Both the position numbers and the translations under genes were made by a program. From the sequence record PV745554.1: a stretch of 64,000 nt of DNA; one strand, 5' to 3'. Shown piece by piece: positions 49,262-53,985 of the stretch (position 1 is the stretch's first letter; each line of letters begins with the position of its first letter). The notes under the pieces were generated by a model. That model searched no databases, had not been told where the DNA came from, and saw only the letters and a list, made by a program, of their open reading frames with translations.

Positions 49262-49555
49262 ACCTCGTGGTGAGGTGAGAACGCCCTCCTCATGCACCGC
49301 TTCGGCGGTAAAGTAGGCTCCAGCCGAAGAGATGCGGGACCAGGGGACCCCGCCACCACGAACGAAGTGCGCCCCAGGTACGCCTCTGACCGAGAAAGCC
49401 CGCTGGCCGTGGGTGAAGTGTATGGTCAAGCGTCTGGGTCCCCGTCCGCCAGGACCGGCGAAGGCCATATGCGCCGAATTCCTGGACCGGATCGTAGGAG
49501 GGGAGCGTTGGCGCCGGCCCAGCAGGGAAGGGTGAAGAGCCCAGCCGGCAATTTT
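49262..49555 (+). ncRNA. Candidate structured non-coding RNA
   Basis: No credible ORF; ACCGC-TTCG-GCGGT hairpin; GGGGACCC/GGGTCCCC long-range pair; CCAGGA/TCCTGG stem. Confidence 0.35.
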
Positions 49556-49569
49556 CTTCAACAACAAGC

Positions 49570-49598
49570 TTGACAGCCGTCGAGTTTCGTGAGAGCCT
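49570..49598 (+). promoter_or_regulatory. tRNA sub-operon promoter 1
   Basis: TTGACA-17nt-GAGCCT; near-identical layout to the promoter at 50186. Confidence 0.72.
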
Positions 49599-49608
49599 CC
49601 TCAACATT

Positions 49609-49671
49609 ATGACGCACCTCCTCACCCGTTACGAACGCGAGGCCACCGGCCTCGATACCACCACCGCCTAA
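49609..49671 (+). CDS. Putative leader peptide 1 (MTHLLTRYEREATGLDTTTA)
   Basis: Starts ~4 nt after the predicted TSS; carries GAA, GAG and GAT codons upstream of tRNA-Glu and tRNA-Asp; overlaps alternative hairpins. Confidence 0.55.
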   Translation: MTHLLTRYEREATGLDTTTA

Positions 49672-49703
49672 AAGCGGTTTTGGTCCGAGGCCTCTTGTGA
49701 TGT

Positions 49704-49944: not shown

Positions 49945-50166
49945 ATGTTTTTCGATCCCTCCTCGCAGTCGAGCGACGCGCTCCTGCGCCACGTCTCCAC
50001 CCAATCTCCGTATGCGGAAGCGGCTCGCACCGAGTTGCTGTCCCGAGGCCTCGTTCCGCTCCTGACGCGGTTCAACGGCTGGCGCCTCGCCCCGAGCGCG
50101 CCGTTTCCGCAGCACCTCATCCCGCGCCCCGATCCGCTCGCGAAGTACACGTGGCGGGCGGGATGA
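49945..50166 (+). CDS. Hypothetical protein within the tRNA cluster
   Basis: GAGG RBS; 73 aa. Confidence 0.55.
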   Translation: MFFDPSSQSSDALLRHVSTQSPYAEAARTELLSRGLVPLLTRFNGWRLAPSAPFPQHLIPRPDPLAKYTWRAG

Positions 50167-50185
50167 AAAATATTCACCACGACGC

Positions 50186-50214
50186 TTGACATCCGTCGGG
50201 AGTTGTGAGAGCTT
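50186..50214 (+). promoter_or_regulatory. tRNA sub-operon promoter 2
   Basis: TTGACA-17nt-GAGCTT. Confidence 0.75.
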
Positions 50215-50307
50215 ATGGACTGTCACGGATCACGACACTCCTCGGAGTGCAAAAGCGTGATCCTTCGTTTTTCACGGCCGCCAGCGGGTGGCCAGTCGAG
50301 AGTTGTC

Positions 50308-50445
50308 ATGTTCGCCTTGTCGCATCTCAGCCTGAGCACGAAAGCCGCCTCCCCGGCGACGCTTTCGCTTGCCCTGCTGGCGACGGCCGCGAAGCCCTCG
50401 ACCAAGCCGACCACCTCGGCCTCGCACTCGACGGAGACCCACTAG
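50308..50445 (+). CDS. Leader peptide 2 (45 aa; 42 codons are A/L/S/H/T/K/P)
   Basis: MFALSHLSLSTKAASPATLSLALLATAAKPSTKPTTSASHSTETH; the residue set equals the downstream tRNA set. Confidence 0.85.
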   Translation: MFALSHLSLSTKAASPATLSLALLATAAKPSTKPTTSASHSTETH

Positions 50446-50547
50446 GGCTCTCGTCTCGGGTGCAGGCCTTGGAGCCGCACCCGCTACCTACATCCTGTAG
50501 ACCTAGCGCAAGGCGGCTCCTCACCAGGGAGACCGCCTTTTCTTTTT
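50419..50547 (+). promoter_or_regulatory. Attenuator 2 (alternative hairpins plus terminator)
   Basis: Hairpin 50419-50467 around the stop codon; CGGGTGC/GCACCCG (50457-50483); antiterminator GGAGCCGC(50471-78):GCGGCTCC(50513-20); terminator 50510-50547. Confidence 0.82.
50510..50547 (+). terminator. Rho-independent terminator between leader 2 and its tRNA operon
   Basis: AAGGCGGCTCC...GGAGACCGCCTT followed by TTCTTTTT. Confidence 0.88.
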
Positions 50548-50559
50548 CGCGTTGATCAT

Positions 50560-50635
50560 CGGGGTGTAGCTCAGTCGGTAGAGCGCTCGGTTCGGGACCG
50601 AGAGGCCGTGGGTTCGAGTCCCGCCACCCAGACCA
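50560..50635 (+). tRNA. trnP: tRNA-Pro(CGG)
   Basis: CTCGG-TTCGGGA-CCGAG; CCA. Confidence 0.93.
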
Positions 50636-50642
50636 ACGCCAT

Positions 50643-50719
50643 CGGGATGTAGCTCAGTTTGGGAGAGCGCGCGGCTGGGGGCCGCGAGGCCGCAGGTTCA
50701 AGTCCTGCCACCCCGACCA
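50643..50719 (+). tRNA. trnP: tRNA-Pro(GGG)
   Basis: CGCGG-CTGGGGG-CCGCG; CCA. Confidence 0.93.
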
Positions 50720-50724
50720 ACAAC

Positions 50725-50797
50725 GCTGTTGCGCGTGGCTTCGCGCCCACCCCTTGGTATGGGGCGGTAGAAGGTTCAATTCCTTCCAGCAGCACCA
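50725..50797 (+). tRNA. trnT: tRNA-Thr(GGT), atypical D-arm
   Basis: CCCC-TTGGTAT-GGGG; acceptor GCTGTTG/CAGCAGC; TTCAATT T-loop; CCA. Confidence 0.78.
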
Positions 50798-50802
50798 ACA
50801 AC

Positions 50803-50872
50803 GCCGATGCCTCTGGGAGGACGCGCCTTTCGTAAGGGTGCGAGGTGGGTTCAATCCCCACTTTCGGCTCCA
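50803..50872 (+). tRNA. trnT: tRNA-Thr(CGT), short D-arm
   Basis: CGCCT-TTCGTAA-GGGTG; CCA; 70 nt. Confidence 0.78.
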
Positions 50873-50927
50873 TCAAACAGCCTGCGGGCTATATCGGAGA
50901 TCAAGTTTCATAGCCTCCAGGCTATAT

Positions 50928-51014
50928 GGATGTGTCACCTCAGTGGCGAGAGGAACGGGCTCTTAATCCGTCAGCGCAAGCTCACCGTGGGTTCGAGTCC
51001 CACCACATCCTCCA
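50928..51014 (+). tRNA. trnK: tRNA-Lys(CTT) with long variable arm
   Basis: ACGGG-CTCTTAA-TCCGT; acceptor GGATGTG/CACATCC; 87 nt. Confidence 0.88.
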
Positions 51015-51019
51015 ACAAT

Positions 51020-51109
51020 GCACAAGTGACCCGAGCGGCGAAGGGCGTCGACTTTTAATCGACTAGGCGTCCAGCCTCACCGAGGGTTCGAGTCCCTCCT
51101 TGTGCTCCA
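51020..51109 (+). tRNA. trnK: tRNA-Lys(TTT) with long variable arm
   Basis: GTCGA-CTTTTAA-TCGAC; acceptor GCACAAG/CTTGTGC; 90 nt. Confidence 0.88.
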
Positions 51110-51112
51110 TGT

Positions 51113-51199
51113 GCGAATGTGGCGGAACTGGTAGACGCGCCGGCCTCAGGTGCCGGTGCCCTTCGGGGCGTGTGGGTTCGAGTCCCACCTTTCGTACCA
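51113..51199 (+). tRNA. trnL: tRNA-Leu(CAG)
   Basis: CCGGC-CTCAGGT-GCCGG; class II variable arm; CCA. Confidence 0.93.
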
Positions 51200-51206
51200 A
51201 CGACAT

Positions 51207-51294
51207 GCCTTGCTGGCGGAAGTGGTAGACGCACTGTTCTCAAAAAGCAGGCCGGGCGACCGGGCTCTGGGTTCGATCCCCAGGTGAGGCACCA
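51207..51294 (+). tRNA. trnL: tRNA-Leu(CAA)
   Basis: CTGTT-CTCAAAA-AGCAG; CCA. Confidence 0.92.
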
Positions 51295-51301
51295 AGACTG
51301 A

Positions 51302-51389
51302 TGCGAAGTGGCGGAAACTGGTAGACGCACCGGCATGAGAGGCCGGCGCCCTTCGGGGCGTGAGGGTTCGAGTCCCTTCTTCGCGACCA
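51302..51389 (+). tRNA. trnL: tRNA-Leu(GAG)
   Basis: CCGGC-ATGAGAG-GCCGG; CCA. Confidence 0.92.
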
Positions 51390-51392
51390 ATG

Positions 51393-51454
51393 TCCCGATC
51401 GGGAAGATTCCAGGCGGCGCGGCGCTCGCGACACCCGGATTTTCCCGATCGGGA
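51393..51454. repeat. Two copies of the palindrome TCCCGATCGGGA in a tRNA spacer
   Basis: 51393-51404 and 51443-51454. Confidence 0.8.
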
Positions 51455-51469
51455 AGACGACGAGATTAT

Positions 51470-51540
51470 GCTGATCGCCGCTGGGCGGGGAGCGGGTTGT
51501 GTCCCCGCTAGGCACGGTTCGATCCCGTGGGTCAGTACCA
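51470..51540 (+). tRNA. trnH: tRNA-His(GTG), atypical D-arm, A73
   Basis: GCGGG-TTGTGTC-CCCGC; acceptor GCTGATC/GGTCAGT; ACCA. Confidence 0.8.
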
Positions 51541-51545
51541 GATAC

Positions 51546-51616
51546 GGGGTATGCGCAGGGCGCAGGCATCCTTTGCAAGGAAGTCGGGGTGGGTTCGAGT
51601 CCCACATACTCCACCA
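51546..51616 (+). tRNA. trnA: tRNA-Ala(TGC), atypical D-arm
   Basis: TTTGCAA loop; G3:U70 in GGGGTAT/ATACTCC; ACCA. Confidence 0.85.
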
Positions 51617-51620
51617 ACAT

Positions 51621-51710
51621 GGAAGGTCAACCGGACAGGCGCGCCGGGACTGCCTCGAAAGCAGATCGCACTCTCCGGGGTGTGGGGATCGAGACCTCGG
51701 CCTTCCTCCA
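51621..51710 (+). tRNA. trnS: tRNA-Ser(CGA)
   Basis: CTGC-CTCGAAA-GCAG; long variable arm; CCA. Confidence 0.9.
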
Positions 51711-51714
51711 ATAT

Positions 51715-51804
51715 GGTGAGCGAACGGGACAGGCGTGCCCGGTCCGCCTGGAAAGCGCGACGCACTCTCCGGGGTGTGGGATTCGAGTTCTCCGCTCACC
51801 GCCA
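51715..51804 (+). tRNA. trnS: tRNA-Ser(GGA)
   Basis: CTGGAAA loop; long variable arm; GCCA. Confidence 0.9.
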
Positions 51805-51808
51805 ACAG

Positions 51809-51898
51809 GGTAGGCGAACCGGACAGGCGCGCCGGCGCCGTTTGCTAAACGAGCGGCACTCTCCGGGGTGTGGGATTCAAGCTCTCCGCCTACCGCCA
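51809..51898 (+). tRNA. trnS: tRNA-Ser(GCT)
   Basis: TTGCTAA loop; long variable arm; GCCA. Confidence 0.9.
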
Positions 51899-52174
51899 TT
51901 TTGATGTTGACGCCGGCCAGCACCGATGTCATACGTCACGACAGAGCCAACGCCCTCGGCCGGGTTGGTGGATGTGCCGGTTGCATCGCGCCCCGTCGAG
52001 CCCTAGTAGCTCTTGCCGTGGAGTTTTCCGCCTCCCTCCCAGACAAGGAGGCGGACCCCTACATCGCGATCCAGTGATCGTCGGCGACGGGCGCCGTCAG
52101 AGCCCCTTGCGCGCGGGAACGCTGCGGAGGGGATCGTCCCGACCACATTTTTCGACCCACGTTAACTTTTCTTC

Positions 52175-52203
52175 TTGACCTTCCCGAAAACGTAGTGTAG
52201 CTT
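52175..52203 (+). promoter_or_regulatory. tRNA sub-operon promoter 3 (leaderless transcript predicted)
   Basis: TTGACC-17nt-TAGCTT; ATG 8 nt after the -10 and no Shine-Dalgarno. Confidence 0.72.
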
Positions 52204-52210
52204 TCCCGTC

Positions 52211-52306
52211 ATGAGCAAGTCGTACCGTCAATTCGTGCAGATTCAGGTCGTCCGGAATTTCCGGGCGGGCCGTTCGCGCATGGATGATGGCGGGACCTTT
52301 ATCTAG
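52211..52306 (+). CDS. Leader peptide 3 (MSKSYRQFVQIQVVRNFRAGRSRMDDGGTFI)
   Basis: Codons 5-18 are all decoded by tRNAs of the downstream operon. Confidence 0.85.
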   Translation: MSKSYRQFVQIQVVRNFRAGRSRMDDGGTFI

Positions 52307-52372
52307 GTCCAGACACCTCAACCCAATTCGCGAAAGGCCCGCCTGGACACCCAGGCGGGCCTTTTTCTTTTT
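52261..52372 (+). promoter_or_regulatory. Attenuator 3 (antiterminator vs terminator)
   Basis: 52261-52278 pairs 17/18 with 52329-52346, overlapping the terminator 5' arm. Confidence 0.87.
52333..52372 (+). terminator. Rho-independent terminator between leader 3 and its tRNA operon
   Basis: AAAGGCCCGCCTGG-acac-CCAGGCGGGCCTTT followed by TTCTTTTT. Confidence 0.92.
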
Positions 52373-52429
52373 CCGTTTCGCTGATCCGCAGGAGATCGCA
52401 GATGAACAACGGGGGCTAGTCCTCCACAT

Positions 52430-52514
52430 GGATGCTTAAAGCTGGAGGGCTCCAGCCGGGGGCTGTAAACCCCCTCTCTTCGGAGGAGTGGTTCGATCCC
52501 ACAAGCATCCACCA
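52430..52514 (+). tRNA. trnY: tRNA-Tyr(GTA)
   Basis: GGGGG-CTGTAAA-CCCCC; variable arm; ACCA. Confidence 0.92.
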
Positions 52515-52519
52515 ATCAT

Positions 52520-53108: not shown

Positions 53109-53125
53109 ACTGCTTTAGAGTTCAT

Positions 53126-53200
53126 TCCAGTCAATGCACAAGGTGTGCAGCGGCACTGTTAATGCCTGTGAGCCCGGTTCGATTCCGGGGTCTGGAGCCA
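53126..53200 (+). tRNA. trnN: tRNA-Asn(GTT)
   Basis: GGCA-CTGTTAA-TGCC; GCCA. Confidence 0.9.
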
Positions 53201-53225
53201 ACACGCCGGCCAAGGCCGGTCATGC

Positions 53226-53308
53226 GCCCTGGTAACCGAGGGGGATTACGAATCCCTTAGTCGTAGCAGGAGTTGAAAAGGGTGGTTCGAATCCACTCCA
53301 GGGTGCCA
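53226..53308 (+). tRNA. trnR: tRNA-Arg(ACG)-like, lacking a normal D-arm, long variable region
   Basis: GGGGA-TTACGAA-TCCCT; acceptor GCCCTGG/CCAGGGT; TTCGAAT T-loop; GCCA. Confidence 0.68.
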
Positions 53309-53315
53309 AATCTAT

Positions 53316-53398
53316 AGCGCGCAGGCCGATCAGGATCATCGTCAGGCGTCGCCCTCCGAAGGCGAAGAGGCCCGGTTCGAGTCCGGGGCGCGCTGCCA
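53316..53398 (+). tRNA. trnR: tRNA-Arg(CCG) with enlarged D region
   Basis: TCGCC-CTCCGAA-GGCGA; acceptor AGCGCGC/GCGCGCT; GCCA. Confidence 0.82.
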
Positions 53399-53401
53399 AC
53401 T

Positions 53402-53816: not shown

Positions 53817-53946
53817 TTGACACGCATTTCGGAGCCGGCTACAACCCTCCTCGTAGAGCGGCGCTGGGGCCTGAAGGCCCCAATCGTTGAGCCTCTGCGT
53901 TGTCGTCAGAAACGGCCCGCCGGCATCCCGCCGCGCGGGCCGTTTC
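53817..53946 (+). ncRNA. Candidate small RNA with its own promoter and a terminal hairpin
   Basis: TTGACA at 53817; TGGGGCC-TGAA-GGCCCCA hairpin; GAAACGGCCCGC...GCGGGCCGTTTC hairpin (53909-53946). Confidence 0.4.
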
Positions 53947-53985
53947 GTCATGGGCGTCATGCGACCTTGAGTCCACCGTGGGTAG

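Follow-up and report, generated by a model that had tools for sequence, protein, structure and literature searches.

A short ORF precedes fourteen tRNA genes of phage BL64

Why phages carry tRNA genes is a matter of debate, in which codon usage, decay of host tRNAs and escape from tRNA-cleaving defences are discussed. The tRNA region of the Caulobacter phage BL64 raises the question whether the synthesis of such tRNAs responds to need. The stretch of DNA analyzed here, called the window, comprises 64,000 nucleotides (nt) of record PV745554.1 and represents the first 64 kb of the BL64 genome, with matching coordinates in a blastn search. By blastn, CcrRogue, a phiCbK-like long-headed siphophage, was about 100% identical to the window, and BL64 is a CcrRogue-like phage of the phiCbK group. 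The tRNA genes of the phage are arranged in sub-clusters, namely Trp, Gly, Gly, then Glu, Asp, and then two larger clusters, the third sub-cluster containing Pro, Pro, Thr, Thr, Lys, Lys, Leu, Leu, Leu, His, Ala, Ser, Ser, Ser and the fourth Tyr, Phe, Val, Ile, Ile, Val, Gln, Gln, Asn, Arg, Arg, Arg. Directly upstream of the third sub-cluster (50186-50549, plus strand) we found a short open reading frame (ORF) between a promoter-like element and tRNA-Pro, an enrichment of cognate residues in this ORF and an intrinsic terminator before tRNA-Pro. It is probable that this unit is a ribosome-mediated, translation-coupled transcription attenuator of the tRNA cluster.

The 14 putatively regulated tRNA genes (50560-51899, plus strand) have the anticodons Pro-CGG, Pro-GGG, Thr-GGU, Thr-CGU, Lys-CUU, Lys-UUU, Leu-CAG, Leu-CAA, Leu-GAG, His-GUG, Ala-UGC, Ser-CGA, Ser-GGA and Ser-GCU. 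Ten of them were called by ARAGORN and the other four were recognized from cloverleaf folds (Thr-CGU at 50803-50877; Ser-CGA, Ser-GGA and Ser-GCU within 51620-51899), which agrees with the number given in an earlier note on this DNA. No promoter-like TTGAC was found inside the cluster, the element at 50186 being the sole TTGAC in 50186-51907.

The composition of a putative leader peptide mirrors the downstream tRNAs

The leader ORF (50308-50445, plus strand) consists of 45 codons and a TAG stop codon and its translation reads MFALSHLSLSTKAASPATLSLALLATAAKPSTKPTTSASHSTETH. It is annotated solely as a hypothetical protein in all records, CcrRogue included, and belongs to PHROG 12742, a family of unknown function. 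For the analysis of its composition, the amino-acid set {A,S,T,L,H,K,P} was fixed beforehand by the 14 downstream tRNAs. Exactly as the earlier note had counted, 42 of the 45 residues belong to this set (A9, S9, T8, L7, H3, K3, P3). Among 62,408 stop-free 45-codon segments in the six frames of the window (mean 20.0, standard deviation 5.4), the leader ranked first, a comparison with random reading frames that the note had proposed as a check. With the same measure, the annotated proteins had a mean of 19.7, a standard deviation of 4.1 and a maximum of 35; the set frequency was 0.444 and the binomial probability of 42 in-set residues among 45 is 4e-12. The next high-scoring segments were off-frame Ser/Thr/Pro/Ala stretches without Lys, His and Leu.

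At the codon level (CCG2, CCC1, ACC4, ACG4, AAG2, AAA1, CTG3, TTG1, CTC1, CTT2, CAC2, CAT1, GCG3, GCC6, TCG6, TCC1, AGC2), the claim that each anticodon finds a cognate codon in the leader held as an inventory. The single, mild signal at this level was that none of the 13 non-Ala Watson-Crick cognates is missing (p = 0.021), a set that includes the rare TTG and AAA; the rare CTT is used twice.

ATG 50308, which is replaced by GTG in Brevundimonas phages, is the sole conserved in-frame start. The earlier note had considered that translation might instead begin at ATG 50215 and yield an ordinary protein of 76 amino acids. This ORF was rejected: its ATG abuts the predicted -10 region and is absent in phiCbK, Magneto, Ccr5 and Ccr10, in which the frame upstream of the leader also differs.

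RNA elements between the promoter and tRNA-Pro

The predicted host-type promoter (50186-50214, plus strand) has the -35 region TTGACA (50186-50191), a 17-nt spacer and the -10 region GAGCTT (50209-50214), from which transcription would start at about 50221-50223. A TTGACA..GTGAGAG element is located 77-124 nt 5' of the leader start in all relatives described below. The end of the leader ORF and the sequence following it can form several alternative helices, all on the plus strand. An imperfect hairpin of 21 bp termed A:B (50418-50468, -32.0 kcal/mol) has codons 38-45 as its 5' arm, and its loop (50441-50444) contains the first two letters of the stop codon UAG (50443-50445). In the alternative hairpin B':C' (50457-50483, -17.6 kcal/mol), the putative anti-antiterminator, CGGGUGC (50457-50463) is perfectly complementary to GCACCCG (50477-50483). 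The putative antiterminator C:D (50471-50520, -26.4 kcal/mol as a whole) is formed by perfect pairing of GGAGCCGC (50471-50478) with GCGGCUCC (50513-50520; GCGGCTCC in the DNA), and it is part of the minimum free energy (MFE) structure in phiCbK and Ccr10. It encloses a small two-step hairpin (50482-50508) with the helices 50482-50486/50504-50508 and 50488-50492/50496-50500, in which the pair U50489-A50499 has changed to A-U in 7 of 10 phiCbK-like phages, the one compensatory change in this hairpin.

The intrinsic terminator (50510-50549, plus strand) consists of a stem formed by 50510-50521 and 50527-50539 (-18.9 kcal/mol) followed by UUUUCUUUUU; the DNA letters directly 3' of the stem (50510-50539) are TTTTCTTTTT. 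It ends about 11 nt before tRNA-Pro (50560), with no promoter in between. Its homologues are annotated as rho-independent terminators in phiCbK, Swift and Karma, and its variation among close relatives is limited to the loop. The long hairpin with the stop codon at its loop, both competing pairings and the terminator had been postulated in the earlier note, and each of them was recovered. A perfect 8-nt antiterminator occurred in 1.4% of dinucleotide shuffles of 50446-50509 (p = 0.014), and the combination of an 8-nt antiterminator with an anti-antiterminator of at least 7 nt in 3 of 5000 shuffles (p = 6e-4). The fold of the leader region was far more stable than that of shuffled sequences (z = -4.5 and -5.1).

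A further hairpin with a U-rich tract is predicted by MFE folding in the 5' untranslated region (50227-50272, plus strand). It pairs 50227-50234 with 50256-50263, contains an inner helix (50236-50240/50245-50249) and is followed by the tract at 50264-50272. In BL64 the element resembles a terminator. The hairpin is kept in all 10 phiCbK-like phages compared, the U tract being broken in some of them and the U-run interrupted in phiCbK-type phages, and a comparable GC hairpin with a U/C tract precedes the leader in PW and Bambus. Possible functions are those of a pause site, a stabilizing element or a ribosome standby site.

Conservation of the leader in related phages

Like the ORF, its composition, the pairings and the terminator, their conservation can be read directly from the sequences. 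The relatives comprised Caulobacter phages, Brevundimonas phages and two metagenome contigs, with three diverged phage clades. In 17 of 17 distinct relatives read, the leader ORF lies between promoter and terminator directly before tRNA-Pro. Between the promoter and tRNA-Pro, the identity is 87-100% across 26 phiCbK-like records, and 50446-50560 is nearly invariant among close relatives. The tRNA arrays of BL64 and phiCbK share 84-85% identity; a whole-genome identity of 62.6% has been reported for Rogue and phiCbK (Gill et al., 2012).

Colossus, PW, five Brevundimonas phages and the two metagenome contigs contain an ORF of 39-45 codons with 21-40% identity to that of BL64 and 82-93% in-set residues. 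These distant relatives share the upstream TTGACA promoter, the order of promoter, ORF, hairpins and terminator, and the matching downstream tRNA families, with 107-118 nt between the stop codon and tRNA-Pro. The leader peptide of CcrColossus is MTFSTHKPSTLKPATGAASLAHASLLTPATSKPSLSRSL, with L instead of S at residue 4 in CcrPW. That of the five Brevundimonas phages starts with GTG and reads VTTLSHKLS...LSTLAHAP...KSPTT..., and the two Logan metagenome contigs encode a peptide of the same type. Among uncultured relatives, the arrangement of leader, terminator and tRNA-Pro was found in contigs from the public sequencing runs SRR26541668 (contig positions 604-738), SRR26541666 (1207-1341) and SRR26885033 (1873-2007). 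A large protein-database search added two new metagenome relatives; the new metagenome leader peptides MTKLSHTLSKLKTATTASLSLAHAPAKPSTKSPTNGGLTFEETL and MTTLSHKLSLKPASLASLSLAHAPATLKPTTPAIVALTDSGTQI both start with GTG in the DNA. A pattern scan of IMG/VR for further relatives returned only contigs attributed to the isolates CcrBL10, CcrRogue and CcrColossus, a metagenome pattern scan gave 35 matches, 34 of them without tRNA and the remaining one AT-rich and apparently unrelated, and a scan of GTDB genomes for the leader yielded no relative. Neither the GTDB scan nor the large protein-database search detected a relative of the leader outside the position before tRNA-Pro. In the Roseobacter phage DSS3P8 the tRNA region is laid out differently.

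The variable sites of the ORF fall on codon positions 1, 2 and 3 in the numbers 10, 10 and 7, a pattern that does not correspond to a protein under purifying selection. The replacement states remained within the tRNA set in 15 of 17 cases compared with a mutational null of 0.469 (p = 5e-4), and they include chemically radical yet in-set exchanges (T/S/K, L/P/S, A/P, A/L, A/T, K/T/S, T/H, H/L). In Ccr10, an in-frame 9-nt insertion adds Ala-Ala-Thr, which corresponds to three in-set codons. The stop codon is located in the apical loop of a long hairpin in 8 of 8 representatives by one comparison, in Colossus and PW in the stem just below the loop, and the stems around it differ in sequence (GGAGACC/GGCUCUC, GGCUGG/CCAGUCC, CCUGU/ACAGG, GGGACC/GGUCCC and others). 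The terminator is present in phiCbK-like phages, Brevundimonas phages and the metagenome relatives.

A second putative leader precedes the following tRNA cluster

A sister unit (52175-52375) with the promoter TTGACC-17-TAGCTT is located before the Tyr/Phe/Val/Ile/Gln/Asn/Arg tRNAs. Its leader ORF (52211-52306) has 31 codons (31-32 when homologues are included) and encodes MSKSYRQFVQIQVVRNFRAGRSRMDDGGTFI; it is followed by a terminator with a perfect stem of 13 bp and a U-run (52334-52363). Since ATG 52211 lies 7 nt past the -10 element, the mRNA would be leaderless. Leaderless mRNAs are common in Caulobacter. Over all six frames of the window, no run of residues from {Y,F,V,I,Q,N,R} is longer than YRQFVQIQVVRNFR within the sister leader (14 residues versus 9 for the next). 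This composition is kept in the homologous leaders of phiCbK (MSKTYRQFVRQIQVVRNIRAGRSRMADEGFRD), Colossus (MMTYRNNVRQIRVRQFNLAGRSHVGDGGSEG) and Gurke (MMTYRQNVQNIRVVRFYRAGRSCMCEGLVGG), with the stop codon in a hairpin loop.

In the sister unit, region 1 (GUCGUCCGG, codons 13-15) pairs with region 2 (CCGGGCGGGCC, codons 17-21), which is a copy of the terminator 3' arm placed inside the ORF. In 4 of 4 diverged phages, region 2 pairs with the terminator 5' arm over about 12 bp while the 3' arm is absent. These predicted pairings suggest a trp-like 1:2, 2:3 and 3:4 layout, in which stalling would give readthrough. The two units thus have in common a promoter, a short ORF rich in cognate residues, a stop codon in a hairpin loop, a terminator and tRNA genes. 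They differ in that the sister unit would be leaderless and has 31-32 codons, a simple trp-like geometry and an antiterminator strand within the ORF, and there is no sequence similarity between them. Each leader matches its own cluster: the leader at 50308-50445 has 42 residues in its own tRNA set and 1 in that of the sister unit, and the sister leader has 18 in its own set and 6 in the other (Fisher p = 2.4e-10). The reading of the ORF as a leader peptide is supported by the conservation of the ORF in both place and composition, by the replacements, which stay within the set, and by the sister unit, which mirrors its own tRNAs. Conservation across the phage subfamily and the repetition at the second tRNA cluster also support an extension of this interpretation beyond BL64 and the single cluster.

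A third and weaker attenuator candidate may be located at 49570-49703, before tRNA-Glu and tRNA-Asp. Here, a promoter-like TTGACA precedes an ORF of 20-21 codons (49609-49671, MTHLLTRYEREATGLDTTTA) with the residues E-R-E...D kept across clades and a stop codon in a hairpin loop, and CGAGGCC / GGCCUCG / CGAGGCC-UUUU repeats are found just before the two tRNA genes. The enrichment of cognate residues in this ORF was not significant.

Proposed mechanism and folding models

In the mechanism that we propose, an RNA would be started from the host-type promoter and a ribosome would translate the 45-codon leader, 42 codons of which stand for amino acids of the 14 tRNAs. With plentiful aminoacyl-tRNAs, the ribosome would keep pace with RNA polymerase and reach the last dozen codons or the stop codon. 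There it would melt A:B and leave B (50457-50463) free to pair with C (50477-50483), whereupon the terminator (50510-50539) and its U-run would form and transcription would end 11 nt before tRNA-Pro. With even one of the tRNAs in short supply, the ribosome would lag within codons 2-33 and A:B would stay closed, so that 50471-50478 could pair with the emerging 50513-50520 and the polymerase would read into the tRNA genes. The outcome would be a homeostatic supply of phage tRNAs controlled by translation speed and summed over seven amino acids. Whether the helices follow one another exactly as modelled we regard as an evenly balanced question.

The effect of ribosome position was modelled by moving a 29-nt footprint along the leader ORF in its full 5' context, using equilibrium folding. 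In BL64, with a ribosome at codons 2-33 or none, the probability of the terminator was 0.08-0.89 (mean about 0.56) and that of the antiterminator 0.09-0.92. With a ribosome at codons 34-46, the terminator reached 0.95-0.97, the antiterminator 0.00-0.02 and B':C' 0.84-0.93. When the terminator 3' arm was not yet made, the antiterminator had a probability of 1.00 for ribosomes at codons 2-35. The scan of Kabachok gave a shift of the terminator from 0.38-0.47 to 0.89-0.97 in the same direction as in BL64, in Bambus the terminator rose from 0.60 without ribosome to 0.97 with a ribosome at the stop codon, and in phiCbK the direction was that of BL64 (a ribosome at the stop codon favored the terminator) but the effect was weak. 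We infer a switch direction as claimed in the earlier note, in which a ribosome at the stop codon causes termination and one stalled upstream causes readthrough; it is consistent with the folding of BL64. By our estimate, which was summed rather than computed, the terminator hairpin together with the small hairpin amounts to roughly -28 kcal/mol, and the antiterminator (-26.4 kcal/mol) and terminator states would then be nearly equal in energy, as in trp. Since attenuation is decided kinetically, folding models of this kind can show compatibility only.

Several results weigh against an attenuator of this kind. The masked-ribosome check that the earlier note had suggested gave a mixed picture: the shift was as expected in BL64 and Kabachok, and in Bambus between no ribosome and a ribosome at the stop codon, it was weak in phiCbK, and the scan was noisy in Gurke and reversed in Bajun, and in BL64 a short 5' context reduced the shift of the terminator to 0.85 -> 0.96. 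In an equilibrium test, the accessibility of the antiterminator prior to synthesis of the terminator did not distinguish one ribosome position from another, because predicted long-range pairings interfere. As written, the model predicts readthrough in the absence of translation, unlike trp. Colossus and PW are without a canonical U-tract terminator. Covarying base pairs are few, since the close relatives hardly vary in this region; RNAalifold applied to five Brevundimonas sequences returned the antiterminated fold, with changes on both sides at only 3 pairs. No clear Shine-Dalgarno sequence is evident before the leader ORF, and the 6 GCC codons are unreadable by the phage tRNA Ala-UGC under standard wobble rules. 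Codons strictly decoded by the 14 tRNAs number 36 of 45, compared with 35.6 expected from the codon usage of the phage. TCT, TCA, AGT, ACA, ACT, CCA, CCT, CTA and TTA, whose absence the earlier note had listed, are missing as this usage predicts and carry little signal, because they are rare in a genome of 66% G+C. Both the list of absent codons and the decoded fraction equal genome codon usage, and codon choice was dropped as evidence of selection.

In a wider and decidedly tentative reading, to which we incline less than to its negation, each tRNA sub-cluster of the phage would stand behind its own leader-peptide attenuator written in its own codons, with synthesis on only when host tRNAs are depleted and off after refill. 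Such depletion could be caused by the codon demand of the phage, by decay of host RNA or by anticodon-nuclease defences of the host. Under the same tentative reading, such sensors would span the phiCbK-like Caulobacter phages and their Brevundimonas relatives.

Alternative explanations

The alternative that fares best is a translation-coupled regulator with another logic, in which translation of the leader would prevent Rho-dependent or intrinsic termination and stalling would reduce the output of tRNA, or which would respond to amino-acid starvation or guanosine tetraphosphate (ppGpp) instead of the tRNA pool size. The reversed scan of Bajun and the unsettled state of the model without translation would suit it, as would the mild C-richness of the ORF (GC skew -0.16 to -0.21). 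Moreover, since charged tRNA is sensed, a leader ribosome alone cannot distinguish a shortage of tRNA from a shortage of amino acid. In GC skew, however, the ORF does not differ from the neighbouring genes, and the idea of a Rho (rut) site was rejected for this reason. In addition, a ribosome at the stop codon favors the terminator in BL64, phiCbK, Bambus and Kabachok, and the geometry of the sister unit is the canonical one of trp, where a stalled ribosome would lead to readthrough. We consider a regulator of this other type improbable.

The region might also act as an untranslated structured 5' leader or small RNA that serves processing or stability of the tRNA precursor or binds a protein or tRNA as a riboregulator, the ORF being incidental. 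The near-invariance of 50446-50560, the high stability of the fold and the lack of an obvious Shine-Dalgarno sequence would suit such an RNA. In this GC-rich region each of the six frames is open over 36-111 codons, and an open frame by itself therefore proves nothing here and was dropped as coding evidence. An incidental ORF is at odds with the conserved positions of start and stop codon, the in-frame indel and the codon-wise in-set replacements; furthermore, the composition bias is frame-specific and no Rfam family, T-box included, matches. We infer that the ORF is translated and regard a purely structural role as highly unlikely.

Slighter still is the chance of an ordinary small phage protein of PHROG 12742 that has a promoter and terminator to itself, the tRNAs being transcribed by constitutive leak-through or from upstream and the composition being a low-complexity coincidence: for all its annotation as a hypothetical protein in every record, the existence of the family and the conservation of M1, H6, L21, A22, P30 and T32 across clades, it leaves unexplained that third positions show no excess of changes, that radical replacements (T/K/S, L/P/S, T/H) stay in the tRNA set, that the most extreme composition of the window matches an independently defined set, that a conserved hairpin system includes the 3' end of the ORF, that a second ORF mirrors its own tRNA cluster and that relatives were found in no other position by the GTDB and protein-database searches.

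Comparison with known attenuators

The attenuator proposed here has the leader ORF, cognate codons, terminator and predicted alternative helices that structurally define the attenuators of his, ilv, thr, trp and pheM-pheST. Like hisL of the enteric his operon, it combines a short ORF of regulatory codons with a series of over three alternative helices that ends in an intrinsic terminator, and the outcome would likewise be decided by ribosome position. hisL differs in responding to one amino acid (7 His in a row) and controlling biosynthetic enzymes, compared with seven amino acids over 42 codons and tRNA genes as targets here, and no sequence or Rfam similarity of the leader to hisL was found. 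The ilvGMEDA and ilvBN (Leu, Val, Ile) and thr (Thr, Ile) attenuators also contain mixed codons, so that shortage of any one amino acid relieves termination, but they combine two or three amino acids instead of seven and control biosynthetic genes. pheM of the E. coli pheST operon is similar in that a leader peptide controls a gene of the translation apparatus with feedback through charged tRNA, yet it controls a synthetase rather than tRNA genes and responds to a single amino acid. A T-box riboswitch likewise reports tRNA status through a terminator/antiterminator switch, but binds uncharged tRNA by a specifier codon and the T-box sequence without a ribosome, whereas the readout here would occur through translation.

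None of the Rfam leader families (His_leader, Leu_leader, Thr_leader, Trp_leader and others) matched 50150-50560 at the gathering score or at E <= 1. Thr_leader gave a chance-level match only, elsewhere in the window (52303-52369, E = 0.95), and no T-box match was found. With no covariance-model match and tRNAs as downstream genes, the unit is not a classical amino-acid operon leader.

Full-text literature searches turned up no account of tRNA genes, whether of phages or of other origin, that are controlled by a leader peptide. To our knowledge, the described cases of leader-peptide attenuation are operons for amino-acid biosynthesis and a small number of synthetase genes, and neither tRNA genes nor phages are among them. 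Attenuation and leaders are not mentioned in the founding genome paper (Gill et al., 2012). If the proposal is correct, these would be the first tRNA genes autoregulated through the translation speed created by their own products, and seven amino acids over 42 codons would make this the broadest multivalent attenuator described. With two or three independent candidate attenuators for different amino-acid sets, the locus makes the question whether phage tRNA genes respond to need accessible to experiment in a harmless pair of host and phage, Caulobacter NA1000 and phiCbK, and the leader might be used as a compact, naturally occurring reporter of how fast codons are decoded globally.

Further observations in the tRNA region

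Atypical tRNAs at 50803-50877, 51620-51899, 52431-52516 and 53124-53401 escape ARAGORN and score under the Rfam threshold, so that the deposited annotations undercount the tRNAs. They are Thr-CGU, Ser-CGA, Ser-GGA, Ser-GCU, Tyr-GUA, Arg-CCG and a probable Arg-ACG. The gene annotated as 'Ile-aat' (53126-53200) folds as Asn-GUU. The two tRNA-Lys genes, CUU (50928-51014) and UUU (51020-51109), are 87-90 nt long with a long variable arm, also in all relatives; this class II shape is normally that of Leu, Ser and Tyr tRNAs. The spacer of 80 nt that separates tRNA-Leu-GAG from tRNA-His contains two copies (51393-51407 and 51443-51457) of the 15-nt direct repeat TCCCGATCGGGAAGA, each with the palindrome CCCGATCGGG inside; the repeat is possibly a processing or binding site.

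Directly 3' of the Trp-Gly-Gly tRNAs, a skipping-rope RNA motif (RF02924) was detected at 49265-49361 with 45.8 bits, compared with a gathering score of 36.7. Finally, 53817-53950 carries a near-consensus Caulobacter promoter (TTGACA-17-TACAAC) followed about 90 nt further on by a terminator-like GC hairpin, with no evident ORF, and may encode a small RNA.

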